This document shows positions 21,021 to 64,000 of a DNA stretch of 64,000 nucleotides, piece after piece. The stretch lies in the NCBI GenBank assembly GCA_965649825.1, contig OZ287698.1, positions 511,949 through 575,948 on the forward strand. The letters are read 5' to 3'. This stretch comes from Penicillus capitatus. Lineage: Eukaryota > Plantae > Chlorophyta. Under the pieces are notes generated by a model. That model was not told the origin of the DNA and did not search any database. It worked only from the letters and a program-made list of their open reading frames with translations. A program made the translations under genes and the position numbers. Each line of letters starts with the position of its first letter. Within the stretch, counting starts at the first letter, position 1.

Positions 21021-21551
<531 letters not shown>

Positions 21552-31211: not shown

Positions 31212-31225
31212 TAATACTTTAATTC

Positions 31226-33560: not shown

Positions 33561-36500
33561 ATGGGAAGTAACGACGAATCCCGACAACCACTACTGGAGG
33601 ACGACGGCGATGCGGATGAACACTCCCCGGTTCGCATAACATCTGCTAACTCCACGACAACGACGGCACGCAGACGTAAGTTAAAACAATAAGACTGCCG
33701 GAATTGAAGGTTTTCGGTGCCGTTCTTGCTCTGACGTCCAGTTCGTCCATCCGCCTTTCTAATTCTCTGCTAAACGAATCGTACGAATATCTTGTTTTGC
33801 GACGGCACGAGATTTCCTTCGATGACCTCTTCTGTGCTGCGACGTGGCAGACGGAGTCTCTAGCATTCGTTATGTCTTTATAGGCGCTCCACGCTTTTCT
33901 CTTATCGATTTCAAGCCTCTCAATGGAATTCCCTTTCGATCTCTTGAACCATCGAAAAACGGCATACTCTTCACCTGTCGTGCATTTTCGGCAGACGGGA
34001 CGTGTTTAGCCACAGGAGATATGGGTGGCTGTATCAGGTACCCGTCCCTGCTGTAGTCACTCACAATTGTGTTTAATGACCAGACTGTATGTAGGCTGTG
34101 GAGAACTACAGACTATAAGCTTGTCGCCGAAAAGAGTAAGGCGTTCGACCACGCCATCGATTGCTTACGCTTCATACAAAATGAAAACGATAGACTCATT
34201 GCCGTCGACACAAGAGGATACTACCGATGCCTGAACCTGCCGTGGTCTGATGATGAGAACCAGCTGGACGCCACATCCGTAGCAGAACTTAGCTGCAGTA
34301 GCTTCTCGTTGGTAGATGGTGAAAGATTTCTTAACGACATACCCAAACCGCTTCCTTACAGCGACACTTGCAAACATCAGTTCTCAAGAAATGGACGGAT
34401 CCTGCTGCGCATCAAATCTACAGGTACATACTTTGAACCCGAATACGAAATACGTACCATTGAAGTCATTAAGCTGGGAGGCAGTATACCGCAAGTCATC
34501 CATCTCGATGAAGATCGGAAGTATCAAAAAGGCTTCCCCTTGCTTTCTAAGAATGGTGAGGGTGTCCTGGTGTGCTCCATGCTGAATACAGAGGTACCCA
34601 AAATAGCCGCTGGTATGTGTGTAGACATTTTGCTTAGGTATGGCCAAAGTTGGATTTCGAAGCTGGGTCAGGTCATCAACACTCGATGACTCTGGATGGC
34701 ACTCGTGCCGTCTGGGGATTGCAGGGTCAATATTTGCTTTTGTGGAAGACGACTGATAATATAGAATCATCGACGAAACAATCGACGATCTTCGTGTACA
34801 AAACGGAAGATCTGCGTCGTCATCACAGTAGCGGTCAATTGAAGCCGTTTTGGGATAGGAAGTTTCCAGCGGGGCAATCTCGCTACGAAGCGCAAATGTT
34901 GAAACCCCTCTCAGCGTCAGACAAAAGCGTCGAAGTACTCATTGCAGAAATGGATGTGCACGGAAACCGAAGAGTGTTGATCTGGGATATCTTGACAGAC
35001 ACCGCCAGAAACCAGATAATGATTCCGGCGGAAAAAGAGACAAGAGTGTTTAAAACGCATCCAGCGTTTGGAGGAAGACAGGACGATGAAAGTGTAAATG
35101 ATCCGCAATCAGAACAAGATGATGAGTTCCACAAGCTCTGCATCATCGAGTCAGTTCATCCAAAATTCTGCATCTCCAAGAACAGACAGTGGATTGGTAC
35201 AATCTCTCGAAGGTTTCAGTCGTGTTCCATTGTCTCCGTCAAATCTGGAGCCACAGTGTGGAGTTCTGGCTTTGCACAACGCTTACAAGTGGGTCCGATC
35301 GACATGCCTATTAAAGCGATATTTGACCCAAGTGGGGATTATTTTTTGGTCATGGGCGAATGCGCTATCATGGTATGCGCTCCAGAGTTTCTCCACGAAA
35401 AGCCGCATGCCGAGGAATGTGATCAGACATTCCTCAGAGCATATACTTGTCTGCCTAGTCAGTCTCTCGCAAGTGCCTTGGAGGTCAGAGAATACAACAG
35501 TGGGGTTTCGAGCTGGATTGATGACGTCACCCGCACCATTAGCCATAACAATTATATATCCGATGCCACTCAGTCTGCTGACGGAAAGAGACTAGCCTTC
35601 ATTGTTTCCAACAGAGAGACGTCTTCCCAGCCAATCGGATCGGCAAAAATCGTCTGCTTTGAAAAAGGGGAAGGCAGAGCGTTTCCGGATCTAGCATTCA
35701 AAGACGCTGGAACAGAGGCAGCTTCAGAATCATTCATCCCTAATCGATTGTTCTTCTACGACAACGACAACGGACCAAATCAAGGGCTTGTTGCTTTTTC
35801 TGTGATTGACAAGCCGACAGCGACGTTCATCGACATTCGAACAAGGAAAATGCGAGAAAATGATCTGGAGAACATCGACAGATGCCTTCGGATATCTCAG
35901 ACAGCAGATCGGAAGAAGGTGACGATCCTCGACATCAGGAAAGTGATCATCCTTGACTTAAGAAGCGAGACAACGTCCGAGATGGAATACAAGGTTAACT
36001 TTAGGAACATCCTGGAAATGGTGACCGCCAAATCGAAGCGGAAGCGCAGGACAAGACTCGATCGCAGAGAAGAAAACACTCAGAGGCGAGTCTCTGATGA
36101 TGGTTGCTGCGTCCTGCTCTCGTGGGACGAAGGAAGGAAAGAGAGTATCGTCGTGCATCCATCCAGTGGACAGCAAGAAGTGGAAGACCTTCTGAAGCAA
36201 CCAAACAGACAACTGTCGGACCATTGCACACTGTCAAGCGACGGCAAAGCAACCTGCTTCATTGACATGTGCGAGATTCCCAGCGACAGGATAACGGTTG
36301 GAATCTTCAACGAATCTGGTAACGCTATCATGTGAAGTCCGATTTACAGTTGTGTCTGTAGATCGGAAAGCCTTTCATCGCATTCACCTTCCATTCGGTT
36401 CTCTTAAACCGCTAGATGGCAGTTTCTTCGACGCGTCTGATAGGACGGGCAGCATAGGAGACTCTTTAGACAACATCAGAAAGTCGATCTCTCGTACTTC

Positions 36501-39460
36501 CTTCTCTTCTTTCTTCCCTCGTGACACCGCCATCCAGGTGCTCTGGGATGTCGAAGGACGATGGCTTTCTACCGTAAACCGACGAATAAAAGCCAAGACC
36601 CCGAAGCCTTGGCCGATGAGCTTTCGGATGTGTTTTGTGGAGCATCTGATGACAGTTCAGAGATTTTCTTGGACGGCGGGCACTTGCACCACCGCTTCCC
36701 CTACGAACAAGGCATGCGTCGAATCCGTCGCTTTACATTTAGCGACACAGAAGGTAGTACGATGGGATACAGGAGGCTTGATGCCAGAGATCGCGACGAC
36801 ATCAACGACTGCTTTCAGAAGTAGGTGCATTCATGTATCTACAGCCGCCCAAATAGAATGCCATTCTGCAGATTAGCGAAGAGAAACGGTCCTTCCTTTG
36901 TCAACACGCCCTACGGATCCGGACAGTCGTTCTTCCGTGAAGCATTTAGGAATGGAGACAAAGAAGTAGTAAAGTGCTGTGTCGACCATGCCGTAAAGAC
37001 TGGTGTTCTGCTGGATGTGGGAGACGTTCCTTGCTTCGACGATGTGAAAGAGGAAGCAATTGAGCCTGCCTGTCGCAATATCGTTGTAAGAAGCACTCAC
37101 ACACTTTCTGTTTCGAAATGGACAAACTGTTTCATTCGCCAGGAAAAGCTCAAAGACCTTTGGCATCACTGGTGGAGCATCACAGACACGGAGAATGATC
37201 GACCTTGCAGAGAAGGGTCATCTGATATCCTGAGCGTGGCCTTGGATGAGAAATCAAAGGAGCGCGTCAAAGAGGCTGTCGAGTTGATATGTTCTCCGAT
37301 CACACCGTTTAGAAGCGCAGCATGGCTGATGAAGAGATATTACAAGCAGTTGTGGAAGGAATACCCAGAGGTTATCATGCACGTTCTTTACCATGACTCC
37401 GTCTTCTCCGAAACCTGTCAACCCAGAGTCTACGACAAGTGTTTGAACTTGGCATCATGGAAAGACAAAGCGTTGCATCAGGGCACATCGGACACGGTTT
37501 CAAACTGGGAGTTTATCGACTTGCCTGATCGTCTGGACAAACGAAACGGATTAAAAGATCAGAAAATTGTCGAAGTCGGAGAAAACGAAGAGGACGTGGC
37601 AACCGTGCTGGCCTCGCTCAAATTCCTTCGCATCGAGGATGCAACGCGGATTGGAATGAATGGAATCATTCGTCCATTGCTCATGCGTAATGCCCCAGTA
37701 GACATTTTCCGCAGCAAAGCAGTCAAAGCCGTTACCCAGTACAAATGGTTAACGTACTGGAGAAAAGGTTTTCGTTGGTACGTCGCCCCTTATGCACTGT
37801 TTATGGCTGTGTTCACTACATATGCCATTTTCGTTGCCAGATCCTCTGCCGTTTGCAAAGGAAAGTATTCAGACATTATTGTGAAACATTGCTGTCTCAT
37901 TCTTATGATTCTCTTCGGTCTGAAAATGTTGTACGAAGAAGTTTCTCAACTTTGTACATATATGGAAGACGGACGAGCACATCTTGGTAGCCGAATGAGA
38001 GGAGTGGCTTACTTCTTCAGATCGAAGTGGAATTGGCTGGATCTTGCCTCTTGCACGTTTCTGCTATTGTTCATTCCAACCCTTCACCTATCGGCTTGCC
38101 TTACATCAGGTTCGATGCCCATGTCATCAGACAACACTCGGAAAAACGATGGGACTTTGTTAGGCGAAGCGGAAGACTCTGGTGATGTATTGGATAAAGC
38201 ACTTTCAGCGACTCTGGCCGTGGAAGCCATAATAGCATCCATCAAGGTCGTCCTATGTGAATCAGATTCTTAATTGATGTCAATCATTCGTCGTAGGGTT
38301 GGTACTTTGCACAACCATTCCGTATCTTTGGTGCCCTGGTGCTGATGGTCTTGAACGTTATCGTCGACTGCTTCGCCTTTTTGGTGTTGTCTTCTGCAGT
38401 TGTCTTCGGATTCGGACTGGCACTGCACATCCTCCATCGACATGCAACTGAAGAGGCTGAACCTGATCACAACGACGATGATGAAAAACAAGGAGATTTC
38501 ACTGGCGATTATGGATCCTTACACAAAAGCCTACTGACCCTCTTCTACGCTCTTTTTGGGTCATTTGATGCCGATGTGAGTCTCCTAGGGCAATCGTCAT
38601 TGGTAAGCATTTTGTGTGCAGTTCCCAGGTATGGACGGTGGCATGACTGCACTTTTTACTCTCTTCTTCGCCTTTTACATGATCGGTGCAGTCATACTGC
38701 TGTTGAATCTTCTCATCGCTATCATGGGAGACACTTTCGACAAGATAAAGAGTTCCGAGGAGTCCCAGAAGTTGATGGCGAGGGCTAAATTCATAGACGC
38801 TTACGAGGCATCGCTGCGAAGCGACAGCAAGAAGGATTTTGAGTGAGATGTTGCAGAACTCCAGAACATGTGACGCACATCTTCTTCATTGGCTGTAGGA
38901 AAGAAACAGGAAAGTACTTGCACATCTTGGAGTATGCAGACGGTAGTGCCGTTCGTAAGATGTTTTCTTCGTGGACAGGAAAGCTCCGCATGCTGGAAGA
39001 ACGATTCGAGTACGTCGCCTGAAGGGGACGTTCTTTACATAAGAAACATCTATGTTTATGATTAACCAACATTGTACCCTTTAGGTCCTGTATCATGAAA
39101 GTCGGAGATAATCTGAAGGCTGACTTGGAAAAGCATGATGAGAATCTGAAGAGGAAATTAAAAAAGCAAGATGAGAAGCTGAAGGAAGAAATTAGAAACG
39201 AAAACGAGAAATTGAGAGCGGAATTGAAAGAACAGAATGAGAAACTGTATCGTCTGATGCAAAGAATGGCTGAGAAGGTTGAAACAGAAAGCACGACGAC
39301 GAAGGGGCAAACGCCGACAGCAGAGGGTGGCGACAAGCCGGACGATGCCAATATCTCAGCAATGGAAACAGATGGTGGTAAACAAGAAGATACAGCAGGT
39401 CGGAAGGAAGATAGCCCGGGATCAGGAAGTGCGAGTGGTGAAGGATCGTCAAACCCATAA
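33561..39460 (+). CDS. WD40-like beta-propeller + TRP-like cation channel, paralog A (~1700 aa)
   Basis: Exons splice in frame from MGSNDESRQPLLED. WD40 blade FTCRAFSADGTCLATGD..IRLWRT and many S.DG/N.G blade motifs. TM domain YFFRSKWNWLDL, S4-S5 GWYFAQPFRIFGALVLMVLNVIVD, pore LFYALFGSFD, S6 LLLNLLIAIMGDTFDKI, TRP-like helix MARAKFIDAYE, and a coiled coil. Confidence 0.85.
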
Positions 39461-40884
39461 CACAACCGGAATGAAACAGGAGTGGGTGGGCGTGCAAGGA
39501 AGATAGGAGGCCCCGACTGGGCTGCAGAAGAAGGATTAACGATTGAGTGGCTTTTACATCTCCCTTTGAACATAGTATATCGGGAGAGCAGAAGAAGGAT
39601 TGACAAGGTTCAGTGATACTGGGATTGCGAACACTTAAGGGAGATCATGGAGGGGGAGCACAAGAAAGAGTAAACAAACTTTCTGACAGTTTCAAGAAGC
39701 ATTCGGCGCGGCGAGGATCAAGTGGATCAATGATTCTGAACAATAAGGTCCTTCCCAACCAGAATGCTTGAACAGTTTGACGCGGAATTCTGTTGATTTT
39801 TTCTCCTTTGCCCGTAAGGTGTCATGCTTGATGCAGACGACCTAATTAGAAACAAACGACCGGAATGTGAGGGGGCGAGGCATCGATTTTGCATACCGAT
39901 TTTTTCAGCGGGTTGATTGTTAAGAGAGGAGACTTTCTTTCTTTGTACCATGCATCTCTGAAGAACAGGGATCAAACACTTTGGTGTGAAACCTGAAGAC
40001 GTGACGATTACGGACTACCGCTAAAGAACACATATTGTCTTGCAGATGAGGAAGAAAGACAATGAGCAAGACTCACTGGGTTAGCGGTGTAATTAATAGA
40101 AAACGATCAATATTTCAATCAGTGTTCCTCTATTTCCTTGCAGTTTTGATAAGCCAAACCTAGCAATCATGAAACAAGCATCTCGATTAAGCAGGAACCG
40201 CGTTATGTTAGACTCTGCCTGAAGGATGTTATTTGAATGGTCGATTCTGATCGAGGCCCCGATCGCGTGCGGCGCAGATGAAAGATTGATCACAGCTCTC
40301 CGACCTCGAAGAGATCGGAGTGCACGTGGAAGCACTGATTGCTCGTTCTCACTCAGCCTGGTGCGAATCTCGAACACTATCCGATGCGTGGAATCGGCAA
40401 CAGAATCTGGAACGTGTTGAGCACATCATGAGATGGTCTTCTGTCGATCTCTTCGCCGCGTGCGTGTTCCACAAGCGAGAGGTCAGCAGCTCTTAGACCA
40501 GCTCCCGATGGAGATCTTGCGGCCATGGCTCTCCTCTGACGCCTCCAACATGCAACCAAAGCACTTCGAGATTCGAGCTTGACGGTGTATAAATTCACAT
40601 TCATTTCAGAATGTGTTCAATTTGCCTTGAATCGTCTGACAGACGCGCGGAGACTCGCTCAGGCGTCTTGACCGCGTCACAGTTGCGATTTGCTTTTCAA
40701 GTGTCGCGGCGACGCGAATGGCGTAGGATCTGCGTCATCGAGATTCCTACACGCCGCTCACGGTCTCTGTTCTCTTCAGACGGCTGTCCTACTTTTGTCC
40801 TCCATGCTGATTGTGTGATGTGACGTAACCGCTTGACAACCTTCACCTCGGAAACGGGCGCATAGAGTTCGATGACGCTATTGC
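39281..40884 (+). repeat. Inverted-repeat arm 1 (partner 45384-46925)
   Basis: Identical six-frame ORFs mirror each other (39727-39975 vs 46295-46543; 40093-40377 vs 45893-46177; 40611-40823 vs 45445-45657). Confidence 0.95.
39640..40610 (-). pseudogene. Decayed unknown gene antisense to and downstream of channel A
   Basis: Mirror of 45660-46620(+). The diverged copy behind channel C keeps the same frames (QAExNITxxLLNRD; HLILAxPNAxxKLxESxFT). Confidence 0.4.
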
Positions 40885-40999
40885 TGAGGCTGTGATTATG
40901 CAAACGAGATACCTCGATCCCGGGCCTCACATTCGGAAACGCTGTCAACGCCGCGCTGAAAGAAAGAACTCAATGTCGACAAAGGGGTAAGATCTTGTA

Positions 41000-43560
41000 A
41001 AAGGCTTGAGTCTGGAGGCTTAAACTCCATTTGTAGCATGGGCATAGTTTAATCGCTTTGATTTCAATCAAATGATAATGTCATGTCAAACAACAGGAAC
41101 GTGGAGTCAAATGTCCGGCATTTCTTTCTGAATTCGCAACAATACTTGCCGAAGGCATGGATCAAGAACTCAAAGATAAAATTCTGGATGAATTGACAAG
41201 TAGCCGCACTGGGATTTAGGGATAATCCAAGAATGAAGTCATACCAGCTTCACAAAACTAGAAAGGCCGAAAAGCAAAAGTAAGACTTTTTGGCTGCTTG
41301 AACGCCCGAGAAACCTCAAGAATCTGTAGAAACAAAGACTTCTTTGACCTTTTGCTGACGAAGAAAGGCTTTCTCCTTGGAAACAGATTTTGAAACTGTC
41401 GGCACTATAAGAAGGCCAATTTCCAATGCCAAAGGCTAAGTCTCCAAGAAAACGTCTGAATACCACTTCTCTTCAAAATGTAGAACCTGTGGGAGAAGCC
41501 GTCTGACACCTGAGTGTATATCATGAGAACAGGAAAGGGCAAACGACTGACAGCCCAGCACACTCTCTCAGGACTGGGAAGACATAGTGCATCAAAAAGA
41601 AGGCCAAGAGAGGGACGCCCCTGAAGAAGGACCATACCAAGAACTCGGACTAATGGATACCTCTCCAGCAATGAGGAATCTAAGAACTAATTAATGAAGT
41701 CCTAAACGGCAAAAATTAGCTGTCATCTATTGGCTAGTTTCCTGCTGTAAGGTTAACTTAAGATCCACTCTCCTTAACTTCAGATTGTTAAAAATTCACT
41801 TGCAGTGGAAGTCATTCAATGTCATTGCGATCTCACAACCACTAAAGGAACTTAGACTTGGGCCAATTTCATTTCTAGCCGTTTTTAAGTCGGTTACTTG
41901 CTGCTCTTCTGAGATATCGGCCAGCTGGTTATAAAAAAGCACTTCCTATTGAATTGGGTATCCAACCCACTCAAGTTGCTGCCACTATTTTATTAAGAAC
42001 TGATACTGGGGAACTCGGTATTATCTTTTTTGCATTACACCGCACGACTGGCAAGAGGCAAGAGGCAATAGAGCCACTGAACGATAACATTATGGTCTTC
42101 AAAGCTAAAAGCCAACACATGCTCATTCTTGCTTAAACGGTCGTAGCATGTGTTGGTCCATGCCTGCCTGTCAACTGACGGCATAGGACAACTAATTGAA
42201 GAACTCTTCTTGTACACGTCAACTTGAACTTAGTCAATACATGCGCATCGGATTCCATTTTTCTTTGACTCGAACTATATCAAGACTGGTTAGACATTAC
42301 TCGGTCTGTCGTCATCTTACCGAGTTCAATACATCAATGGTTGCGAACTGTCGACGTCATGATCTGTCATTATCATTATACGTCCATATCACAATTTCTC
42401 CTTGTCAGACACATTAATTACTACACAACGATGTCATTTCTCGTCTTGCTAGGGCCAGATAGATTGCATCGCTCCGTTATCTCTTAATGCTTTGACTGAA
42501 CTTGCAAATGAGAGAGGGTTCAAGATGGTGAAAGTGAAATGCTAATAGTATCTAAAGAAAAGCAAACTCTTATATCTCATGGCTGACTTAAAGGATAGAT
42601 AAAGTCTACGAAGTCACTATCCAGTAAGAAAGATATCTTTTTCCAAAGAACAGTTTTGATTCGGAATTCAAGAATCTCCAACCGGTTTGACAGTGCAGAG
42701 AACAATCGGCCAAAGACCGAACCTGAAGCGTCCAAATTTCGTGTCCGTCAGGCCTGCAAACAGTTCTTCGTTCAAGCGAGAAAGAAAAAGCGAATACTCA
42801 CTCTTATCGAGTTTTGTAGAAAACTAATAATCTCTACTGATCGTAGACAGACTGCGCACATAGAACAAAATAAGAAATAAAGGTCTCTTCGGTTTGGCTT
42901 CTGGCAGAGACAGGCACAACAGAAGCACAGTGGAACTCCACTCATTCTATTTACGACACAATGACTCTTCTCCCAGACTAAAGCAATAAATGTTGACAGT
43001 CATGGATTATTTGATTCTGTGGACACTTGTATTCTTTGGCTAAAGTTAATGCACTGAGATACCTGATCATGTCTGTCTTCAAGTACTTCCTCTCGACATT
43101 ACATGTAATGTATTAGTCAGTTCATAAGGGTTTGCTTTTCAAACGACTGAGGGAGCTCTTCAAGGAAGCCTGCTGTCTCCTTGCTGTTCTTAATAGATAT
43201 CGACTCTTGTATGAACTTCATGGTTGGCAGTGTGAGAGGTTAAATCTTTGCAGATGATCTCCCCTTTCTCAGAAATTGATACACGGAGTAATGGGCTCGA
43301 AGGTCTCCAATCAGCTTTGAATCACCTGAACGACTAGTTCAGAGGAATGATGACTGATGCTGTTGTGGGCAACATAAAGCTAATCAGATTTCGCACCTGA
43401 GAAAGCTGTGATTACAGACTGGAAACTTTCTGGGATCTCTACTCAATGCAATGCTGGCATGTCCTGTTTGAGTGGTCTTGGTCCTGGTGCTGACTAAGTC
43501 AACACTTTACTCTTCTTTCCAAACTGCAACAATCATTGCTGTGCAAACAAATGTGAAAAT
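41000..43560 (-). mobile_element. Decayed non-LTR (LINE-like) retrotransposon
   Basis: Ordered degenerate motifs on the minus strand: endonuclease-like LYVAHN and IGDLRAH (~43300-43380), RT-like WPIS, VDLK, LLQGRPSLGLLF (~41590-41640, cf. QGxPLSPLLF) and FRRFLG (cf. FKYLG). Many stops; AT-richer. Confidence 0.55.
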
Positions 43561-43588
43561 TAAACTCTCATCTTATCACGCAGGTGCG

Positions 43589-45060
43589 CTAAATCCTTAT
43601 CAAGAATACATCTATCATATTTGCACAGTCTGTTAGTGTCCTTGCCGATCGTTTTGTTTCAATCATCTCTCTGATTTGATCAAGTTTCATTTCCAGAGAG
43701 ATGCTCTTGGCACACCGTTTGGAACTTGATTGTGTGCTGCAGCAACGACAGACTTTCGAAGAATAAAACCAATAATAGATCCACCAGCATTCGAGTGTAT
43801 ACGTTTGTTCGCGAAGCTTGCCTTTGCCGTTTAGACAGTCAGCTGGATATGCAAGAACCGATTGCAAATCGACCGTATTGATAACGCAGAGTATCTTTGC
43901 AAGAATCGTGTCTGTTTTGGGTTCTATGTGTGTCATAAATCACAGTCAAACGGGATGTTCTGGAATGAATACCCATAGATTCCTTCAAAATCTGTCTCCC
44001 TTTCACAATGGCTTGTAAGAGCAAGGTCTGCTTGAAAGCATCACACTTCAACGATAACTGAACACTGATTTGTTTTAACAATCCCTTCAAGAAGGTAGCA
44101 AGATCTTTGCTGAATGCATCGCTTGACATCCAGTCCATAATGGATAACTGTCCAATCCCGATCCTTCTCTCTTTTTACTGAATCTTGTGCGAGATGGACA
44201 GAGACCCACAAGCTATGAGTAATGATTGTTCTTCACATAAGTCTTCTTGCTGACGAAGCTTATATTCCTTCTGAGACGATTTCTGTGGATCTATCTGTGC
44301 CTTCGATAATCCGATGCCTTCTAAAAAGCAATCCCTCATTTTTGCAGCCACAATGTCATGCCTCATAACTGCGCTCAGCAGCACGAGCAACGGAGTCGTC
44401 TTTTCAATCTTGCCAATCTGACTGCGGTGACGCTCTTGAACAAGAGCGTTCACTTGTCTAAGAACATGATGCAACGCTCTCTGCGGCAAAGACCAGCAGA
44501 TCGCAGTTAGCGCGCTCGTCAATCACAACAGACGTCATTTCTTTGGTATGTCTCAGCCTCTTGGAGACTGTTCGGAAGGTTCTCTCTCTATCGACATCGA
44601 AATCGATGCCCAAAAGCGGAAAGAAGATGCAGAGCGAAAAAACGAAAGAAGTTTCGCTCCCTGTGGATATCGCGCAACAAAACAAAACGTTCGAATCTTC
44701 GACTGAGTATGTGGCTATGTAAATGATGACAGGTGAAAGGTGACGGACGACGTAGATCTGTCTCTGTACATATCACACAAGTAATCAGTGCGCTCCTCCA
44801 CCGACCGAAGTCTGCTTTACCTCTTCACCTCGTCGTCATCTTCAATCAGAACGCTCATGAAAGCTTTGACCATACGCGATTATTCATGAATCGTGCTTAA
44901 CTGAGTGAGTCACGCTGTCATTCTAGAGGGTTACTGTGTGGCCCTGACGATGGAGGTGACAGATGTGATAGAAGAGGTGATTAGGCGATGCTGACCTCAA
45001 AACGACGAAATAAACATGCTCGATGAAAGGAATTGGCTTCAACTGCTCCAAATACTTTGG
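43589..45060 (-). pseudogene. MON1: MON1-like (vacuolar fusion Rab7 GEF subunit) relic
   Basis: Colinear segments resemble plant MON1: EHVYFVVL ~ KHFFIL; VLLSAVMRHDIV ~ VLFSLLMCRHKVV; IMDWMSSDAF ~ SNFVMSSESF; VQLSLKCDAFKQ ~ ILLTTRSDAFHH. In-frame stops and frameshifts are present. Confidence 0.45.
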
Positions 45061-45383
45061 GACATCATATGACTATTTCTTCCTCTGAGTGTCACTTAGA
45101 GGTGGCAGATACAGTTACAAAGCACTATGGGCAGAGAATGAGTGTAGTGGTCTTTTGCATATCTGTATTCTAATGTGACAGCAAAGCTGCCGGTCGTCTT
45201 CTATTATTCACTCAAGTGGACCGTTAGATAGGTGGAGGCAGCTTCAAGGATCTGAAAATGACTCGTTTGACGCCGTATCATCTTCACTCTGCTTCGCGTT
45301 GTCAAATCGAACCAGAACATAAGGACGGAACACGGTACATTCTCTCCCTCAATTGTCGAAGTGAACTCATTGGTACAACCACG

Positions 45384-49900: not shown

Positions 49901-52676
49901 CGTTGCTCGAGAGTACAGAGATCAGGAAAAGGTTACCCGATTCGTTGAAGATTCCAATCGTTATTCGGCTGTTGGGAATTTCGTGCATGTCAATGAAGCA
50001 GGTTGCTCTGCCGTCGCTTGACAGAGTGCAGTAGTCCGAAAGCATTTTGTATGGTTGCTTTAGAAGATCTTCCACTTCTTTCTGGCGACTGGAGGGATGC
50101 ACGACAATACTCTCTTGCATTCCTTGATCCCATGAGAGCAGGACGCAGAGACCATCATCAGAGACGCGCTTCTGAGTACCTTCTAGTCCGCGGTTGAGTC
50201 TTCTCGCGAATTCCCACTTCGTAGTGGCGGTCACTAATCCCAACAAGTTTGTGAAATCCACCTTGTATTCTATCTCGGACGTTGTCTCGCTTCTTAAGTC
50301 AAGGATGATCACTTTCCTGATGTCGAGGATCGTCACCTTATTCCGATCTGCTGTCTGAGATATCCGAAGGCATCTGTCTATATTCTCCAGATTGTTTTCT
50401 CGCATTTTCCTTGTTCGAATGTCGATGAACACTGCCGTCGGCTTGTCAATCAGAGAAAAGGCAACCAGTCCTTGATCTGGTCCGTTGCCGTTGTCGTAGA
50501 GGAACAGTCGATTAGGGATGAATGATTCTGAAGCTGCCTCTGTTCCAGCGTCTTTGAATGCCAGATCTAGATAATCTCCGGCTGCCCCTTCTTCAAGGCA
50601 AACGATTCTTGAGGATCTGATTGGCTGGGAAGGCGTCTCTCTGTCGGGAACAATAAAGGCAAGCCGCTTTCCGTCAGCAGACTGAGTGGCATCGGATATG
50701 TCACTGTTATTGTTAATAATTCTGGTGACTTTAGTAATCCATTCAGGAAACTCGTTGTCGTGTTCTCGGTCTTCCAGGGCACTTGCGAGTGACTGACTAG
50801 GAAGACAAGCATATGCCTTGAGGAATGTCTGATCACATTCCTCGGCACACGGCCTATCACTGAGAAACTCTGGAGTGCAAACGACGATGCCGCGGTTGCC
50901 CATAATCATGAAGTGATCTCCATTTGGATCAAACATCGCCTCAGTCGGCATCTCATGCGAAGCCGACTGCAAGCATTTTGGAGAATTAGAACTCCAGACT
51001 GTTGCCCCAGATCTGACAGCGGCAATGGAGCACGACTGAAACTTCTGCGAGAATGTACCGAGCCACTGTTTGTTCTTGGAGATACAAAACTTTGGATGCG
51101 CAGCTTCCATGATGCGATGCCGGTGCTTGCAAGATTCAATATCTAGATCTAACTGCGAAACCTCCGCGATTTCATCGACTGGTCTGTTATGTGTCTTCGA
51201 AGCTGCCTCGTTCGGTGTTGACTGTCTTTTCGCTGAAATCAACAACTCGTTGTTCTCGGAGTCGTTCACGACATCCCATATCAACATTCTCCGGTTTCCT
51301 TTCACGTCCATTTCTGCAATGAGCACTTCGATGCTTTCGCCCGTCTCGGAAAGAGGCTCTAACATTCGTGCTTCATAACGAGATTCTCCAGCGGGAAACT
51401 TCTTTTCCCAACGCGGCTTTGCTTGACGGCTTCTATGATGATGACGACTCAGATCTTCTGTTTTGTACACGGAAAGCGTCGGTTCTTCGGAATCTGTGCG
51501 CCACAGAAGCAAATACTGACCCTGTAATCCCCAGACGGCACAGGTGCCTTTCAAGGTTATCGAGTCCTTCTTCTGCGTCTTAGCGTCGAAATCCAACCTT
51601 GGCCACACCTAAGCGGAACGTCTACACACATGCCTGCGGCTACTTTGCATACCTCTGTCTTCGACACGGAGCACACGAGGACACTCTCACCATTCTCGGC
51701 AAGAAGGGGGAGCCCCTTTTGATGATGCTCATCATCTTTATCGAGCCGAATGATGATAGTGGTACTGTCTCCCTGCTTGAAGACCTCCATGGCGTTGATT
51801 TCGTAATCTCGTTCAGAATAAGTACTCGTGGAATGGGTGAGCAGCAAGATCTGTCCGTTCTTTGAAAACTGATGCTTGCGAACTGTACTCATCGGAAGCT
51901 CCGTCTCAATGGTGCTTTGAAATTTGTCCTTCATTTCAGTTGATAAAAGCAAGCGCATGCATTCCGTCGCGGACGCGTCCTCTCTGCTTGACTGGCTCTC
52001 ATCACTAGACCACGACAGCTTCATACGTCTGTAGTGTCCTTTAGTGTCGATTGCAATAAGTCTATCATTCTCATTGTGTTCGAAGCTTAAGCAATCGACG
52101 GGGTGTTCGAATGCCTTGCTTCTTTCATCGATAAGCTTAAAGTCTGCAGTTCTCCATAGCCTAATGTTGTGACATTTAACAGAATCGTGATTAAGGATGA
52201 GAGACGCACCTTATACCACCACTATCGTCTCCTGTCGCGAAGCACGTCCCGTCTGCCGAAAACGCGTGACAGGTGAAGAGTATATCGTCATTCGATGGTT
52301 CCAGCACTCGATAGGGGATTCCGTTCAGAGGCTTATAGTCGACGAGCGAAAAACGTGGCAGGCCTAGAAAAGAAAACACAGTGACTTTTAGACAGTCTCG
52401 CGTGACAGCACAGAAGTTGCCGAAGAAATGGTCCCGCCGCTACGGAGCCATTTGTACGAAACGTTTAGCAGAGAATTGGCAAAGAGGATGGACGAGCTGG
52501 ACGTCGAAGCAAGAACGGAACGGAGAACCTTCAACTTAAGACGTCAGACTGATTAACTTACGTTTGAGTGAAGTCGCTGTCGTGGACTCGTTTCGGATTT
52601 TGCGAGTCCGTGAGGATGCCTCCACATGCCTGCAGTCCTCCAGCAGAGGTTGACGTAGTTCGTGTTCGCTTCCCAT
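46746..52676 (-). CDS. WD40-like beta-propeller + TRP-like cation channel, paralog B
   Basis: Same exon structure as A, from MGSEHELRQPLLED; pore LFYALFGDFEAE; LLLNLLIAIMGDTFDK; ends GEGSSNP*. No disabling lesion found after splicing. Confidence 0.85.
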
Positions 52677-52819
52677 TCTGCGTCCCGTGAAAGTTCGCAT
52701 TTGCTGTCGAATTCGGTGGCACTGAAGGCCGATAACGTTCGTGCGACGTTCGCAACGAACGTAGGCAAGAAAGAAATCTAACGCACTAACTAAACGCAAG
52801 ACATGGTATCGATTTAAAT

Positions 52820-53990
52820 ACTAATAAGCACACGTGGCGACCACGTACTCGACGGACAGGCAGATTCCTCAGAGGAAGACGTCAGCTTCTATGCTGAAGA
52901 TCTCGACCGCTCTCTGCCCTTCAAAGAGACAAGCAGCAAAGTCAGGTTCTTTGACAAGCATTCGGCGATAGTCGTCGGACGACCCGTGAATCGTAACTCC
53001 GCAGAACGATGCCAACGCTATCCTTAACTGTGGCTGTCTGCGTTATGCGATGCACTGTCGCTTCTTCTATTCTCCGTATGCGCCTCTTGCTTGCTCAAAA
53101 GGCCTAGCACACCGAATACCCATTAATATGGGATTAGTCCTCGTTCCATCTCGTAGCAGAAACGTATTTCAAACGTTCTACTCTGTATCAGACGATCAGT
53201 TCAGCAACACTTGGTTTCATGTGCGACATGGATTCCTCATATAGCGCCAAACGACATCCGAGTTTTCAACAAGAACTGCTTTGAAGTACGCTGCACAGTG
53301 CGAAACAGAGGATCAGGATCTGGACTACGTGTTTTCTGACGCTTTTTTATCTGCAATGTCTGCGCAAAGTTACTGCTGTGTCTAGTGTGGAGATGCTCTT
53401 GTCAAGAAAAGATAAGAAATGCAGTATATAAAATTTTACAGTCAGGAAGAATGTCACAGTGCTGTGTGGATGTCGTCCATCGATGATGAACGTTGAGTCC
53501 AAGGAGACAAGGATTGTTTAATACATAATTACACAATTCGCCCACTCGTGCAGTTTACCGTCTCTCTCTCTCTGAACAGAGCAGAAACACAGAGATCCTG
53601 AGCTAACCATTGGCATCTTAGACGGATTCAGAGATGAAGAGACTCGACGCCACAGAGCGCAGAAGAACCCTGTGTTCATCTCTCCCTTATGTCTTCAACG
53701 CAAACGAGATGAGGTCGAAGCGATAGAGATCGATGTCGATATCACAGCCTCGACCGCCTCAGTAAAGGGGATCATCGTACACCTTCTGAGTCGTACTATC
53801 CAGCAATCGGCGAGATGCGTTACGAAGGAGCTTCATTAAGAAATGTCATTCGAAGCTTTGGAGATGCAACGTCCTTTGTTCTTTGTCCGGAAGATCCAGG
53901 CATTGTTCATAATGCCAGTGACTTTAAATAGCGACCACTGTCAGAATGTCGAACTCAAGTCCAAAGCGGCGGCGGCACGATGACACAATG
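52820..53990 (-). pseudogene. Decayed upstream gene of unit B (homolog of 32220-33421)
   Basis: Reverse-complement similarity to 32220-33421; QPQLRIALASFCGVTIHGSSDDYRRMLVKEPDFAAC. Confidence 0.35.
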
Positions 53991-56699: not shown

Positions 56700-57470
56700 G
56701 TGCGGAAGGTAATCGTAGAAATCGCGAGCTCGACGCTTTGGGAGACATGACGGCCTGCATGACACAGGGCTTCTCTTTAAGGTCGGAGACATGTTACTAA
56801 GCTCTCTAATGCGCAACGCGTGATCGATGACTAGATCTTATTCAAAGATTCAATTAGCCGATATCAGGCAGAGTTAAACATAACGTTGGTTCTGCTTAAT
56901 CGAGATGTTGTCTCCTTGAGGAAATTGTTGTCACCGGCCAGAAAAGTGCATGGAAACAGAGAAGCTCAAATCAAATGCATTCATTCCCAATAGCTGCACA
57001 ACTAGAGTCATTGAACTTGTTTGTGTAATCTTCTCTTCTAATTTGCCAGAGCAATCTGTCCTCTACCATATTACTCAAGAATTATCATGTCTTCAGATTC
57101 CACAACAAAGTGTTTCCCATTCTTCAGAAATGCATCGCAGAAAAAGATATCATCCTTGTCTCTTAAAAATCAACCCGTTGCACAAATCGGTGACCGAAAA
57201 GGGTCCCCACACTTAGGGTTTTTTTTTGTTTTTCTGGTCAGTCGTCTGCATTCCGCCCGATGCCTTACAGAGAGAAAAAGAAAAAGATAAGAATCGACGT
57301 CGAACGGTTCGAGCATGTTGACGAGAAGGATCTTATGTTCAGAATCGCTGATCACTTGATCCTCGCTCGACCGAATGCTGCTTGGAAGTTGCTAGAGAGC
57401 TTCTTTACTGTTTCTAGAATCGACCGAATGCTGCTTGGAAGTTGCTAGAGAGCTTCTTTACTGTTTCTTG
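56700..57470 (+). pseudogene. Decayed unknown gene antisense to and downstream of channel C
   Basis: KKKIRIDVERFEHVDEKDLMFRIADHLILARPNAAWKLLESFFT, homologous to the 46430-46610 region; contains stops. Confidence 0.4.
57367..57468. repeat. 53-bp-period tandem duplication
   Basis: TCGACCGAATGCTGCTTGGAAGTTGCTAGAGAGCTTCTTTACTGTTTCT at 57367 and 57420. Confidence 0.95.
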
Positions 57471-57603
57471 AAGCTCCGCCTCGATGGTCTCGCCCTTTAC
57501 TGTTTGCAACACCAGTTTCACCAGATCTTGTAATCTGTCGGCCGCATCCCGATCGGTCCCTCTGATTTCCCTTGCATACCATCCGCCTTTCTTGCGGTTT
57601 GTG

Positions 57604-60600
57604 TTATGGGTTCGACGGCCCTTCGTCGCTCGCATTTCCCGATCCCGAGCTATCCTCTTTCAGACATGCTGTATATTCTTGTTTGCCACCATCTCTCTCC
57701 ATTGCTGAGATATCGGCATCGTCCCGCTTGTCGCCACCTTCAACTGTCGGCGTTTGTCCCTTCGTCGTCTTGCTTTCTGTTTCAATCTTCTCAGCCATTC
57801 TTTGCATCAGACGATACAGTTTCTCATTTTGCTTCCTCGTGTCGTCTTTCAGCTTCTCGTTTTCCTTTTTCAAATTCTTCTCAGATTTCTTGATGCACGA
57901 CCTAAAGCGTACAACGTTGATTAATCATAAACACACATGTTTCGGATGAAAAGAACATCTCCTTCAGGCGACTGACTCACTCGAATCGTTCTTCCAGCAT
58001 GCGGAGCTTTCCCGTCCACGAAGAAGATACCTTGCGAGCCTCACCGTCTGCGTGCTCCAGTATGTACAGGTACTTGCCTGTTTCTTTCCTAAGTCCAGAC
58101 CAAAGAGTTAAGGTGAAGTGTCTTATCGCACTGCGACATCTCACTCAATCTTTTTTCGCTCTTTTTTAGTCAGCGTTGCCTCCCAAGCGTCAATGAAGCT
58201 CGCCCTCGCTATCAGCATCTGAGACTCCTCGGAACTTTTTGTCCTGTCAAAAGTATCTCCCATGATAGCGATGAGAAGATTCAGCAGCAGTATGACAGCA
58301 ATAACCATGTACAAGCCGAAGAAAAGAGTGAAGAGTAGAGTGAAGAAACGGTTCACGTAGGGAAACTGCAAATGAAAACACTGATCGATGCCGACTGTCA
58401 AGAGAGGATTACCTCGGCTTCAAATGCCCCGAAAAGAGCATAGAAGAGGGTAAGTAGGCTTTTGGGTAAAGATCCATAATCGCCAGTAAAATCTCCGCTT
58501 TTTTCACTTCTTCCATTGAAATCTCCGCCTTTTTCACCTTTGCCATTGAAAAATCCGCCTTCTTCACTGTCGTCATCAATGCCCATCACTTCCTCTGCAG
58601 GTGCATGTCGATGGAGGATGTGCAGTGCCAGTCCGAATCCAAAGATAACTGCAGAAGACAACACCAAGAAGGCGAAGCAGTCGACGATGACATTCCTGAC
58701 CATCAACACCAGAGCACCGAAGTTCTGGAATGGCTGTGCAAAATACCAAACCTGCGATGAACAGAGGATATCATTAAAAAACTGACACGGCTGGGATCAC
58801 CTTAGTAGACACTAGTACGGCTTCTAATGCCAGTGTCGCTGAGAGTGCTTGATTCAATGCAGAACTGAGACCTTCCTGGCTTCCGTCGAATGGTGCTGTC
58901 CCTGGATCTGACGTAAGACAAGCTGATATGTGCAGGGCTGGTATAATCGACAGCAGAAAAATGCAAGATAAAAGATCCAGCCAATTCCATTTTGATCTGA
59001 AAAAGTAAGCCGCTCCTCTCATTCGACTGCCAAAATGTACTCGTCCATCTTCAACAAACGTACAGATTTGATAAAGTTCTTCGTACATCATATATATGCC
59101 GAAGAGAACTAAAACAGCGAGACAGCAATGTCTCATGTTATCATCCGAAAGGTCTCCTTCGCAAACGGCTGAGGATTCCGCGACATAAATAGAGTAAGTA
59201 GTAAACACAGCCATGAATAGTATATAAGGGCCGACATACCAATAAAAACCTTCACCCCAGTATATTAACCATTTATACTGAGTGACAGCTTTGACGGCTT
59301 TGCTGCGGAAAATGTCTGTCGGGGCATTCCGCATTAGCAATGGGCGAATGATCCCATTCATTCCAATCCGAGCTGCATCCTCGATACGAAGGAATTTGAG
59401 AGATGCCTGAACTGTTGCCATGTCCTCTCCGTTTTCTCCTCCTTGAATAAAGAATTTCATAGATCGCAGCGTGGTTACTTTGGTCTCTTCGTGCTCTTCC
59501 CTGTCGACCATCGTCTGATCTTCTAACCCATTTCTTTTATCCAGACGATCGGGAGAGTCAATAAACTGCCAGTTTGAAACCGCGTCCGATGTGCCCTGAT
59601 TCCGGGTTTTGTCTTTCCAAGATGCTAAGCTCAAAAAGTTGTCGTAGACTCTGGGTTGGCATGTTTCGAAGAACATGGACTTCTGGAAAAGAGCGTTCAT
59701 TATAATCTCTGGGTATTCCTTCCACAACTGCTTGTAGTACGTTTTCATAAGCCATGCTGCGCTTCTAAACGGTGTGATCGGAGAGCATATCAGCTCGACA
59801 GCCTCCTTAACTCTCTCCATTGATTTCTCATCCAAGGCTTCTTTCAGAATATTGGATGACACTTCTCTCGATTGATCCTTCTTCGGGCGTCTGACACTCC
59901 ACCAGCGATCCCAAAAGCCTTTGAGATTTTCCTGGCGAATAGAATTTAGTGTATCTCAAAAAAGAAGGTGTACGAATGCTTCTTACAACGATATCATTGA
60001 AATCGGGAAGCTCGACTGCTTCCTCTTTCTCATCATCGAAGCGAGGAACGTTTCCCACATCCAGCAGAACACCAGTCTTTTCGGCATGAGCAATGCAGCA
60101 CTTCACTACTTCTCCGTCCTTGTTCTTGAAGGCTTCGCGAAAGAACGACTGTCCAGATCCGTAAGGCGTGTTGACAAAAGAAGGACCGTTTTTCGTCGCT
60201 AACCTGCAATACACAATCCCGTTTGGGCAGCTGTGGGTCAATGATTGTGTTCACCTCTGAAAGAAGCTGCCAATGTCTTTGCGATTTTTGCCATCAAGCT
60301 TCTTGTATCTCGTCGCACTGTCTTCTGTGTCCCGAAATCTTAAGCACAGGAATCGACGTCTCTCTTGTTCGGAGGAGAAGCGGAAGTGTCCGCCGTCCAA
60401 GAAGATCTCTGAACCGTTATCGGATATTCCACAAAACACAGTCGACATGTCCTCAACTAAGGTTTCGGGTTCTTGGCTTCTGTTGGCTTCTCTGTGATAG
60501 ACAGCGACCGTCTTCTGATGTTCCAGAGGATCTGAAAAGTGGTGTCGTAGGGGAAAAGAAGAGAAGGAAGTACAAGAGATCGAATTCCTTGTGTTGTCGA

Positions 60601-63499
60601 AAACACTCTCTGTGCTGTCAATCCTTTCAGGCATGTCGAAGAAACTGCCCTCCGATAAAGGAGAGGAACCGAATGGAATGTGAACACGATGGAAGACTTG
60701 TCGATCTGTGGACACAGCTACAGAACAAGAGTACAGAGATCAGGATAAGGTTACCTGATTCGTTGAAGATTCCAACAGTTATTCTGTAGTTGCGAATCGC
60801 GCACATATCGATAAAGCAAGTTGCTCTGCCGTCGCTGGACAGAGTGCAGTAATCCGACAGCACTCTGTTTGGTTGCTTCAAAAGGTCTTCCACTTCTTGC
60901 TGTCCACTGGAGGGATGCACGACAATACTCTCTTGCATTCCTTGATCCCATGAGAGCAGGACGCAGCGACCATCATCAGAGACTCGCTTCTGGGTGTCTT
61001 CAACGATGCCGTCCCTTCTCTTGCGTTTCCATTTCGTCTTGGCGGTCACTAATCCCAACAGGTTTGTAAAGTCAACCTTGTACTTTATTGTTTCAAACGT
61101 TGTCTCGCTTCTTAAGTCAAGGATGACCACTTTCCCGATATCGAGGATAGTCACCCTTTTCCGATCTGCTGTCTGAGATATCCGAAGGCATTTGTCGATG
61201 TTCTTTAGCTTCTTTTCTCGCTTCTTCCTCGTCATAAGGTCGATGAACATTGCCGTCGGCTTGTCAATCAGAGAAAAAGCAACCAGTCCTTGATCTGGTC
61301 CGTTGCCGTTGTCGTAGAGGAACAGTCGATTAGGGATGAATGATTCTGAAGCTGCCTGAGTTCCAGCGTCTTCGAATGCCAGATCCGGAAACGCTCTGCC
61401 TTCCCCTTTTTCAAAGCAGACGATTTTTGCGGATCCGATTGGCTGGGAAGACGTCTCTCTGTTGGAATCAATGAAGGCTAGTCTCTTTCCGTGAGCAGAC
61501 TGAGTGGCATCGGATATATAACTGTTGCGGCTAATGCTGCTGGTGACATCAGTTATCCAAGCAGGAAAGTCACTGTCGTGTTCTCTTTCCTCCAAGGCAC
61601 TTGCGAGTGACTGACTAGGAAGACAAGCGCATGCTTTTAGGAAGGTCTTGTCGCATTCCTCAGTATTTAGCTTGTCATCGAGAAACTCTGGAGCAAACAC
61701 GATAATGGCGCATTCGCCCATGATCAGAAAGTGGTCTCCATTCGGATCATACATCGCCTCAGTCGGTATGTCTTGTTGCTCAGTCGAATGCAAAGGATAC
61801 AGAACGCCTGAACTCCACACTGTGGCTCCAGACTCGACGGAGACAATGGAACATGACTGAAACCTCTGCGAGAATGCACCAATCCACCGTCTGTTCTTGG
61901 AGATGCAAAATTTGGGGTAAACAGCTTCAATGATACGGAGTATATAAGACGCATCGTCTGGATCTGATTTCGGATCATTCGCACCTTTATCGCCATGTCT
62001 TCCTCGAAACGTTGTATGCGTTTTAATCAGTCTTGGCCCCCTTTCCGTTGGAATCAGTATCTGGTTTCTGACAACGTCTTTCGTAATATCCCAGATTAAC
62101 ACTCTTCTTCGGTTTCCATTAACATCCGTTTCTGCTATGAGTACTTCGATGCTTTCATCTGACTCGGAGAGGCGTTCTAACACTTGCGCTTCATAGCGGA
62201 ACTTTCCAGGAGGAAAGGTTTTGCTTCTTAACGGTATCAGTTGGTCGCTTTTCTGACAAAGACACAGGTCTTCTGTTCTGTACACGAAGATCGTCGATTG
62301 TTTCGTCGACTCTTTGTTTTCTGTTGTTTTCCACAAAAGCAGATACTCGCCCTGCAATCCCCAGACGGCACAAGTGCCATCCAGAGTGATCGAGTGTTGC
62401 TGTCCTGACCCGGCATCGAAATCCAATCTTGGCCACACCTAAACACAGTGTTTATATGCGAATTGGTGGCTGCTTTACGTACCGTTGTCTCCGACACGGA
62501 GCACACGAGGACACTTTCACCATTCTTGGAAAGCAGTGGGAACCCCTTTCGATACTTTCTGTCGTCATCGAGCTCGATATTGGACGCTATACTCTCTCTC
62601 AGGTTCAGCTTAAAGACATCGATGGTATGGATCTCGTATTTTGGATCATGGTACGTATTTTCGAACTGGACGCGCAGCACGATCCGTCCATTACTTGAGA
62701 ACTGGTACTTGCATATGTCACTGAGATTCTTTGGCGGAAAAAACTGATGAAATCTGCCACGACGTACCGATGCGAGGCTACAGCATACACCTTCTGTTGC
62801 GGATGCGGCATTCAGCTTCCTCTCATCATCGAACCACGTCAGGTTCATGCTTTTGTAGTTCCCTTCAGTGTCGATAGCAATAAGTCTATCATTCTTTTTC
62901 TGTTCGAAGCTTAAGCAATCGACGGCGTTTTCGAACGCGTCACTCCTTCCGGCGACAAGCGTGTAGTCTGCAGTTCTCCACAGCCTAATGTCGTGTCATT
63001 GAACACAATCGTGATAAGGATGAGAGACGCACCTTATGCAACCACTATCGTCTCCTGTCGCTAAGCACGTTCCGTCTGCCGAGAATGCACGACAGGTGAA
63101 AACTGTGCCGCCATTCGATGGTTCCAGCACTCGATGGGGAATTCCGTTCAGAGGCCTGTAGTCGACGAGCGAAAAACGTGGCAGGCCTAGAAAAGAAAAC
63201 ACAGTGACTGTTAGACTGTCTCACGTAACAGTACAGGAGTCGCCGAAAAAATCGTCCCGCCGCTACGGAGCCATTTGTACGAAACGTTTAGCAGAGAATT
63301 GGCAAAGAGGATGGACGAGCTGGACGTCGAAGCAAGAACGGAACGGAGAACCTTCAACTTAAGACGTCAGACTGATTAACTTACGTTTGAGTGAAGTCGC
63401 TGTCGTGGACTCGTTTCGGATTTTGCGAGTCCGTGAGGATTCCTCCGCATGCCTGCAGTCCTCCAGCAGAGGTTGACGTGGTTCGTGTTCGCTTCCCAT
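57604..63499 (-). CDS. WD40-like beta-propeller + TRP-like cation channel, paralog C
   Basis: Same exon structure, from MGSEHEPRQPLLED; pore LFYALFGAFEAE; LLLNLLIAIMGDTFDR; ends DEGPSNP*. The apparent frameshift at ~59950 is resolved by a 55-nt GTAAGA...CAG intron. Confidence 0.85.
58481..58570 (-). repeat. 30-bp coding tandem repeat x3 in the pore turret of paralog C
   Basis: A/AATCTCCGC-type blocks at 58491, 58521 and 58551; protein GGFFNGKGEK GGDFNGRSEK SGDFTGDYGS. Confidence 0.85.
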
Positions 63500-63639
63500 T
63501 CTCCGCCCCGTGAAAGTTCGCATTTGCTGTCGAATTCGGCGGCACTGAAGGCCGATAACGTTCGTGCGAAGTTCGCAACGAACGTAGGCAAGAAAGAAAT
63601 CTAACGCACTAACTAAACGCAAGACATGGTATCGATTTA

Positions 63640-64000
63640 ATACTAATAAGGACACGTGGCGACTGTGTATTCGAAGGGCAGGCACATTCTTCGACGCAAG
63701 ACAGCAGCTTCCATGCCGTAGACCGCGCACGCTGTCTGCCCCGCAGAAGACAAGCAGCAAAGTCAGGCTCAGCCGCCACGAGTCGGCGATAGTCGTCAGA
63801 CGACCCGTGCATCGTAACTCCACAGAACGATGCCAACTCCATCCTTAACTGTGGCTGTTCGCGACCGTCATGCGTTGTGGCGTCGCTTCTTCTATCCTTC
63901 GTATGGATGTCAGCTGTGTGTAACCTTGCGTACTTTCTCAAAGTAGGTGCAGTGCAAACCCGTCGACATCGGATCAGTCCTCGCTTCATCTCATAAAAGA
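63640..64000 (-). pseudogene. Decayed upstream gene of unit C (partial, runs off the window end)
   Basis: QPQLRMELASFCGVTMHGSSDDYRRLVAAEPDFAAC; ~87 nt identical to A 33167-33253. Confidence 0.35.

Follow-up and report, generated by a model that had tools for sequence, protein, structure and literature searches.

Here we describe a cluster of three paralogous genes in a 64,000-nt stretch of DNA from the green alga Penicillus capitatus (contig OZ287698.1, positions 511,949 to 575,948; hereafter the window, numbered from its first letter). Self-BLAST and a three-way MAFFT alignment showed three paralogous units of 7-9 kb each, which we call A, B, and C; A and B are arranged tail-to-tail, and B and C head-to-tail (Table 1). 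Background identity among them is about 70-78%. Set into this background are tracts of 85-100% identity in which the partner switches along the genes, the close pair being, in order, A and C, B and C, A and C, B and C, A and B, A and C, B and C, and A and B. An earlier note on this DNA had proposed that the three copies are fine-scale mosaics of each other, made by recurrent gene conversion. Our results support this proposal through the bounded tracts, the homogenised introns and silent sites, the incompatible trees, and one tract that is polymorphic between haplotype contigs; recurrent ectopic (interlocus) gene conversion very probably made the A/B/C mosaic. The start given for the phenomenon in the note, 35590, needs a correction of scope: it lies inside gene A, and units and tracts begin near 33060.

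The three genes and their products

Gene models were built by aligning A, B, C, the second haplotype of A, and six copies from related loci (10 in all), with two criteria: that GT/AG sites be conserved in every copy and that the reading frame stay continuous. The model of A was projected onto B. The introns are 43-75 nt long, except for intron 1 (208 nt), and some contain ACTAAC-like branch sites. In A, two introns (36494-36537 and 37086-37142) preserve the frame and contain no stop; they came to light only through stops, or indels of a length not divisible by three, that other copies have there. A model with 10 or 11 exons, in which both in-frame introns are read through, was rejected; it made C look frameshifted. 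With 12 exons, A, B, and C are open throughout and their splice sites are conserved. Intron 5 of B has GG in place of AG as its acceptor and is translated through in frame.

The first half of the stretch formed by exons 5-6 of B and the intron between them (49392-49887, minus strand) is only 47-53% identical to every other copy, so that B has here a B-specific segment, either replaced or fast-evolving. Exon 9 of C is 60 nt longer than exon 9 of A and B; a 30-nt unit present 2.9 times (58482-58568, minus strand) adds about 20 G/F/K/E-rich residues to a loop of the channel domain. A separate 53-nt repeat occurs in two copies in the 3' flank of C (57367-57472).

The protein of A has an N-terminal WD40-like region, a C-terminal TRP-type channel with six transmembrane helices, and a coiled-coil-like tail, in that order. 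Pfam Ion_trans matches the C-terminal half with 56 bits (cut-off 25; E=3.7e-15). The nearest solved relatives are TRPV1, OSM-9, TRPV3-5, and NOMPC (E 1e-10 to 1e-6); the matches cover S5-pore-S6 and the helix that follows, and TRPV1 and OSM-9 are the best of them, with E about 1e-10. A has, in these terms, a type-I TRP-like six-helix channel domain. The N-terminal 800 amino acids (aa) reach 23 bits with Pfam WD40, below the cut-off of 27, and several propeller families match weakly. An AlphaFold2 model of the N-terminal 816 aa, made from an alignment of 8 rows, had a mean predicted local distance difference test score of 32 and was judged unusable. The tail is K/E-rich and heptad-like, with weak Pfam matches to Apolipoprotein and coiled-coil families.

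Word-indexed protein searches with pieces of open reading frames (ORFs) returned 8 relatives each, all in two ENA samples, the only two in which ORF fragments of the family were found. When the C-terminal 906 aa of A served as the query in an exhaustive HMMER search of cluster representatives, 1,059 relatives had E<=1e-3. Siphonous green algae, namely Caulerpa lentillifera, Bryopsis sp. KO-2023, and Ostreobium quekettii, supply the best full-length relatives (1,440-1,790 aa, 27-35% identity), and the N-terminal part of several of these relatives (Bryopsis, Ostreobium) passes the Pfam WD40 cut-off. The C. lentillifera relatives P0140, P0141, and P0142 have gene numbers that lie near one another (g7462, g7446, and g7433), and the Bryopsis relatives P0183 and P0189 (BSKO_11758 and BSKO_11728) are on one contig; this suggests that the family of WD40 and TRP channel proteins is clustered in the Caulerpa and Bryopsis genomes as well.

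A protein family with a WD40 beta-propeller, a type-I TRP channel, and a C-terminal coiled coil was named TRPW in two preprints of June 2026, where it is described as an expanded chemoreceptor family of choanoflagellates and the architecture is reported in chlorophytes, diatoms, ciliates, and euglenids (bioRxiv 10.64898/2026.06.15.732144, 10.64898/2026.06.15.732245). A, B, and C appear to have a TRPW-type architecture and are likely members of this family. They resemble TRPW in their apparent domain order, in length (about 1,700 aa), in belonging to lineage-specific expanded families, and in having type-I TRP channels (TRPV) as the nearest structures. They differ from it in that the WD40 matches of A stay under the Pfam threshold and the nearest full-length relatives are only 27-35% identical.

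The earlier note had likened the pattern to that of NBS-LRR clusters and HNWD WD40 arrays. An NBS-LRR or HNWD identity of the genes was rejected: Pfam gave no NB-ARC or NACHT match in A at E<=0.05, and Tandem Repeats Finder detected no arrays of WD-sized repeats in 32000-64000, so that there is no internally homogenised WD array. The comparison holds for the process and fails for the type of gene.

Mosaic identity along A, B, and C

Tract blocks (Table 1) were taken from a four-state segmentation that includes a neutral state; it replaced a three-state Viterbi segmentation, which over-segmented. Self-BLAST, MAFFT, and the segmentation all show the switch of the closest pair along A, B, and C that the earlier note had described, and the tracts of raised identity are flanked on both sides by diverged sequence (background 66-78%). 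The peptides quoted there partition as claimed: SSQPIGSAKIVCFEKGEGRAFPDLAF is common to A and C, LFLYDNGNGPDQGLVAFSLID to B and C, IDIRTRKMREN.LENIDRCL...ILDIRKVIILDLRSETTSE to A and B, and both VDFTNLLGLVTA and SWDQGMQES to B and C.

Upstream of the genes, A and C are identical over the 87 nt that had been pointed out, where the surrounding background is about 80% and B and the copies of a sister species (see below) reach 72-79%. The stretch of about 400 nt said to be shared by B and C across the 5' flank, exon 1, and intron 1 measures 398 nt (B 52431-52828, C 63254-63650) and has 7 mismatches and 1 gap (98.0%). At the 3' end, A 39588-40893 and B 46682-45375 are 98.3% identical over 1.3 kb, compared with 66-78% in the gene bodies. 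That A and B share the 3' end is correct, with the refinement that the shared ends are the arms of an inverted repeat around an apparently invertible spacer. A transposable-element origin of this 3' identity was rejected: homologous sequence, 60-72% identical, is present at this place in C and in every other copy.

The introns follow the identity of the tract that contains them. B and C are 95, 92, 84, and 91% identical in introns 1, 2, 8, and 9, and the identity to A in introns 8 and 9 is 57-63%. Intron 3 is 82% identical between A and B, and introns 5 and 11 are 81 and 84% identical between A and C; the intron values of unconverted pairs are 50-73%. Along the gene, four-fold degenerate sites vary in identity between 0.47 and 0.88, and over 35265-36250 the value is 0.78-0.85 for all three pairs. 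The largest tract, the 3' end of A and B, is almost wholly non-coding. Introns, flanks, and four-fold sites show the same mosaic as the exons, which favours conversion over selection, as had been argued from the homogenised introns.

Among 2,294 informative sites there were 1,030 runs, whereas 1,524 +/- 22 were expected under permutation (z=-22). When the two big end tracts were left out, z in the core (34075-39200) was -8.5, a value not reached in any of 2,000 permutations. A 3SEQ-type excursion test over the whole unit gave p<0.0002 for each copy taken as the child; the core values were p<0.0002 (C) and p=0.005 (B). In a Sawyer-type longest-fragment test with seven sequences, the longest fragments spanned 103 polymorphic sites for B and C and 66 or more for A and B; short fragments of A and C, B and C, and A and B in exons 4 and 7 had p<=0.0005. 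Shared sites are thus significantly clustered by tests in the style of GENECONV, Sawyer, and 3SEQ, with the shortest fragments individually borderline.

A second haplotype, a sister species, and a second locus

A second haplotype of A is available in contig L003. It is colinear with window 24680-39531 and 98.9% identical to it, through all tracts of A to that point. L003 is nearly 100% identical to A up to 39546 and then, over about 600 nt, only 55-85% identical to both arms of the window. By BLAST this divergent stretch shares about 70% identity with each of the arms, with C, and with the flanks in the sister species, while the two window arms are 99.6-100% identical to each other there. L003 then rejoins both arms, being A-type at 40427-40525 and B-type from about 40525, with the switch at about 40525-40625, and it runs on into the spacer in reverse, as the reverse complement of window 45375-41216 at 99-100% (L003 16150-20306).

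The simplest reading of this comparison is that a recent transfer from B replaced the A flank of the window haplotype, or that both arms were homogenised. The distinct A-type 3' flank of L003 is suggestive of a transfer from B to A. The orientation of the spacer was compared between the window and one contig, L003, which stops about 320 nt ahead of the other arm; the simplest reading here would be that a crossover in the arms inverted the spacer in one of the two haplotypes. ORF inspection of the spacer and arms gave no convincing gene, and tRNA and Rfam scans of the whole window were empty.

In the palindromes of primate sex chromosomes, gene conversion occurs from arm to arm and spacers invert, and in plastids the single-copy region flip-flops between the inverted repeats. 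The A/B junction resembles these in its near-identical inverted arms, in the apparent occurrence of both spacer orientations in two assemblies, and in a crossover that would lie inside the arms. By contrast, the arms of A and B are small and consist of the 3' ends and flanks of genes that are otherwise 70-78% identical, rather than of entire multi-gene blocks, and the inversion is seen from two contigs.

Further copies were found at two loci (Table 1). The locus of A and B recurs in a sister species, where it lies next to UNC-50 (97% identical in aa) and contains A2 and B2, the latter inverted. The UNC-50 gene that adjoins the cluster in the window (31229-31975, minus strand) has its best named matches in chlorophyte green algae, at 50-58% identity (Chlamydomonas, Myrmecia, Dunaliella, Volvox, and Ostreobium). 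No copy of C was found in the sister-species DNA fetched upstream of B2, where 8.6 kb of L006 hold other genes. Exon 8 of A2 contains a 131-nt insertion, exon 4 is frameshifted by 1 nt in one A2 haplotype, and B2 contains a stop in frame; some of the sister-species copies may be decaying. The second locus, attributed to the species of the window, carries the tandem copies D and E. A BTB-domain gene follows each of them. Overall identity between D and E is 81%, rising to 90-95% in some segments. Between the two haplotypes of D, identity is 100% in exon 3 but only 87-92% elsewhere.

Neighbour-joining trees with bootstraps were made by segment for A, B, C, A2, B2, D, and E. No single consistent tree holds along the alignment: adjacent segments give incompatible groupings with bootstraps of 94-100% (Table 1). 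The exon-4 switching lies within the 35400-36000 block, in which A, B, and C cluster at a bootstrap of 94-99 and the sister-species copies are excluded, A2 with B2h and D with E being separate. The grouping of B with D and of A with E in exon 3 hints at an old duplication of a two-gene block or at exchange between the loci.

The duplication that separated A and B predates the split of the two species, because segment 37143-37850 groups A with A2 and B with B2 (100% bootstrap). Some segments keep this history from before the split, and others have become homogenised in the separate genomes since then. C is a hybrid of A-like and B-like blocks, B-like at its ends and A-like in middle parts. Part of the signal in which A equals C and differs from B, especially in 37143-37850, is thus old divergence, with C carrying A-type sequence, and not recent conversion.

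The same concerted pattern is found in the other clusters, where A2 and B2 reach 97-99% and D and E reach 95%. A2 and B2 are 97-99% identical where they align to window 36305-36560 (L001 about 9430-9700, L006 about 11500-11760) and 57-82% identical elsewhere; this tract represents an independent recent conversion in the sister species.

Outside the cluster, the window has a second group of paralogues, three direct repeats of about 780 nt that are 72-80% identical (3949-4731, 8017-8787, and 12809-13616). Pfam recognises a GST C-terminal domain in the product of the middle one (8017-8787; E=3.5e-7), and the ORF at 10109-11257, between repeats of this group, codes for a cytochrome P450. An 84-nt tandem repeat of about 2.6 copies, 98-99% identical, is intergenic or intronic at 7625-7847. 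Finally, 21036-21118 and 28227-28309 form an 83-nt direct repeat with 83% identity in otherwise unrelated regions.

Table 1. Units, genes, tracts, repeat arms, related copies, and tree segments (window positions; tracts and tree segments in A coordinates unless another copy or contig is named)
Feature	Position	Strand	Identity	Remarks
Unit A	about 32140-40893	+
Unit B	about 54072-45375	-
Unit C	window end to about 56864	-
Gene A	33561-39460	+		12 exons, 1,722 aa, intact reading frame
Gene B	46746-52676	-		1,749 aa, intact reading frame
Gene C	57604-63499	-		1,725 aa, intact reading frame
A=C tract, A 5' flank	33167-33253; C 63809-63895	+; -	87/87 nt
B~C tract	33435-34091		94%	A at 72-73%
5' B~C tract	B 52164-52807; C 62988-63630	-; -		5' untranslated region, exon 1, intron 1, exon 2, intron 2
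A~B tract	34604-34664		87%	short patch
A~C tract	34665-34792		88%	short patch
A~B tract	34801-34880		80%	short patch
A~C tract	35006-35110		82%	short patch
A~C tract	35534-35687		95%	exon 4
B~C tract	35693-35824		96%	exon 4
A~B tract	35835-35987		96%	exon 4
A~C tract	36418-36722		75%	B at 52-53%
A~C tract	37298-37809		85%	B at 66%; linker before S1
B~C tract	38118-38481		87%
A~C tract	38487-38563		87%	77-nt patch
B~C tract	38569-38675		91%
B~C tracts, channel exons	C 58312-58899; B 47567-48094	-; -	87% and 91%	77-nt A~C patch between
A~B tract	39321-40490 and beyond		98%
A arm	39321-40893	+	98% to B; 100% over about 39646-40427	end of exon 12 and 3' flank
Spacer	40894-45374			4.5 kb, AT-richer, between arms
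B arm	45375-46885	-		inverted-repeat partner of A arm
Sister species, locus of A/B	L001, L005, L006		97.6% between haplotypes	A2 and inverted B2; two haplotypes
Second locus, tandem copies D and E	L007 8750-14850; L004 8550-14600			contig ctg340476, sample ERZ25074695
Haplotig of D	L009
Tree segment	33400-33960			(B,C) 100
Tree segment	34100-34560			(B,D) 100; (A,E) 99
Tree segments	35400-36000, 36872-37086, 39110-39290			(A,B,C) 94-100; (A2,B2) and (D,E) apart
Tree segment	37143-37850			(A,C) 100; (B,B2) 100; (A,C,A2) 99
Tree segment	38060-38575			(B,C) 100; (A,A2) 87
Tree segment	39294-39590			(A,B) 100

Origin of the mosaic

Under recurrent gene conversion, double-strand breaks would be repaired with a neighbouring paralogue as the template (non-allelic gene conversion), and stretches of roughly 90 nt to 1.5 kb would have been pasted repeatedly between the copies. 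The exchanges would differ in age: some very recent (87 nt at 100%, 400 nt at 98%, and 1.3 kb at 98-100%), others intermediate (85-96%), and some blocks would have gone without exchange since before the split from the sister species. The closest paralogue would thus change along the gene, and C would come out as a hybrid. Exchange at the 3' ends of the inverted A and B would maintain their near-identical arms, and at least one crossover within the arms would have flipped the spacer. The tracts, the clustering of shared sites, the homogenised introns and silent sites, the conflict among segment trees, and the differences between haplotype contigs are observed; how the exchange works at the molecular level, which way each transfer went, and whether it has selective value are inferred from them.

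Several observations weigh against this account or limit it. In the 3SEQ-type test of the core, A as the child is not significant (p=0.28). Sawyer-type fragments of 23-32 sites occur also between species (A-A2, A-B2h, and A2-E); these cannot be recent conversion, so that fragments of 21-28 sites among A, B, and C are individually weak. With three sequences alone, sites where A and C agree and B differs could equal a change on the branch of B, and the outgroups resolve this ambiguity for the main blocks and not for every short tract. The roughly 55 differences between A and L003 inside the gene are scattered single-nucleotide polymorphisms, not tracts. B and C are represented in one assembly only, the gene models rest on conservation, and D and E are placed in the genome of the window from the sample that they share with L003.

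The alternative that survives best, though we think it improbable, is that the mosaic is the frozen record of two or three large structural events, with a chimeric C formed by unequal crossing-over or patchwork segmental duplication and the A/B arms formed by one recent inverted duplication. It would fit the missing C upstream of B2, the alternation of B-like and A-like blocks of 0.4-0.7 kb in C, the direct orientation of B and C, which permits unequal crossing-over, and the position of the two largest tracts at the ends of the units. However, tract identities from 85% to 100% imply different ages, exon 4 changes partner three times within 450 nt, and a block shared by B and C is broken by the 77-nt patch of A and C. 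A and B are inverted, and the internal tracts 35835-35987 and 36872-37086 therefore do not come from a single unequal crossover. An independent patchwork exists in A2/B2 and in D/E, and the arm sequence differs between haplotypes.

Regional constraint or lineage-specific rates could mimic a mosaic with no transfer of sequence, given that three-sequence patterns measure only branch lengths, that B is aberrant at 36362-36600 (47-53% to everything), and that exon 4 encodes a conserved part of the protein. We consider this very improbable. Introns and flanks carry the same tracts, and the 1.3-kb tract of A and B is nearly all non-coding. Copies within the genome are closer to each other than to the same-locus copies of the sister species in 35400-36000, 36872-37086, and 39110-39290, and the reverse is found in 37143-37850; this reversal by segment rules out lineage-specific rate variation as the cause.

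An assembly artefact, in which a metagenome-style long-read assembly would have joined haplotypes into a chimera or collapsed the paralogues, is hardly credible: the window does come from a large contig of an uncurated assembly, and L003 stops about 320 nt before reaching the inverted repeat and differs in spacer orientation and in 600 nt of arm, but the paralogues differ by 22-30% over most of their length, too much for an assembler to confuse them, L003 reproduces A colinearly at 98.9% through all tracts to 39531, the tracts do not coincide with contig ends, and a like mosaic is present in three other contigs from two samples.

Known systems and meaning

Mosaic divergence by interlocus gene conversion is known from the globin and olfactory-receptor clusters. 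A, B, and C share with clusters shaped by this process, such as NBS-LRR and HMA4, short tracts of high identity, switching partners, homogenised introns, and incongruent trees, and also the grouping of copies within the genome in some segments and with the same-locus copy of the sister species in others. They differ from the NBS-LRR and HMA4 clusters in the family (WD40 and TRP channel), in the chlorophyte host, and in the mixture of inverted and direct orientations. The fungal HNWD/NWD genes are similar as WD40-containing paralogues that exchange sequence; in A, B, and C, unlike HNWD, the exchange takes place between whole-gene paralogues, over the full length and the flanks, and there is no NACHT domain and there are no near-identical WD repeats. 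For HMA4, interlocus gene conversion among clustered paralogues was reported in the tandem copies of Arabidopsis halleri (bioRxiv 10.1101/2025.10.29.685298). This is a familiar process in a new gene family and a new host.

A more far-reaching idea, which we hold to be improbable, is that the cluster is a module-shuffling sensory receptor system. Conversion would recombine propeller, linker, and channel segments, while diversifying selection would shield exon 3, exons 5-6, and the linker before S1 from homogenisation. A chemoreceptor-like channel repertoire would then evolve in the manner of NLR or antigen clusters, and the invertible A/B junction would be a recombination hotspot.

The family of WD40 and TRP channel proteins was named only in 2026, and the copies described here come from a poorly sampled lineage of green algae. 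With the sister-species locus, the second locus, and the second haplotype, old lineages, homogenisation after speciation, and a polymorphic tract can be told apart in one cluster. A practical warning follows from the mosaic, namely that single-gene phylogenies of this family will be chimeric. Our results suggest that WD40 and TRP channel proteins diversify in the same way as other receptor families that face the environment.

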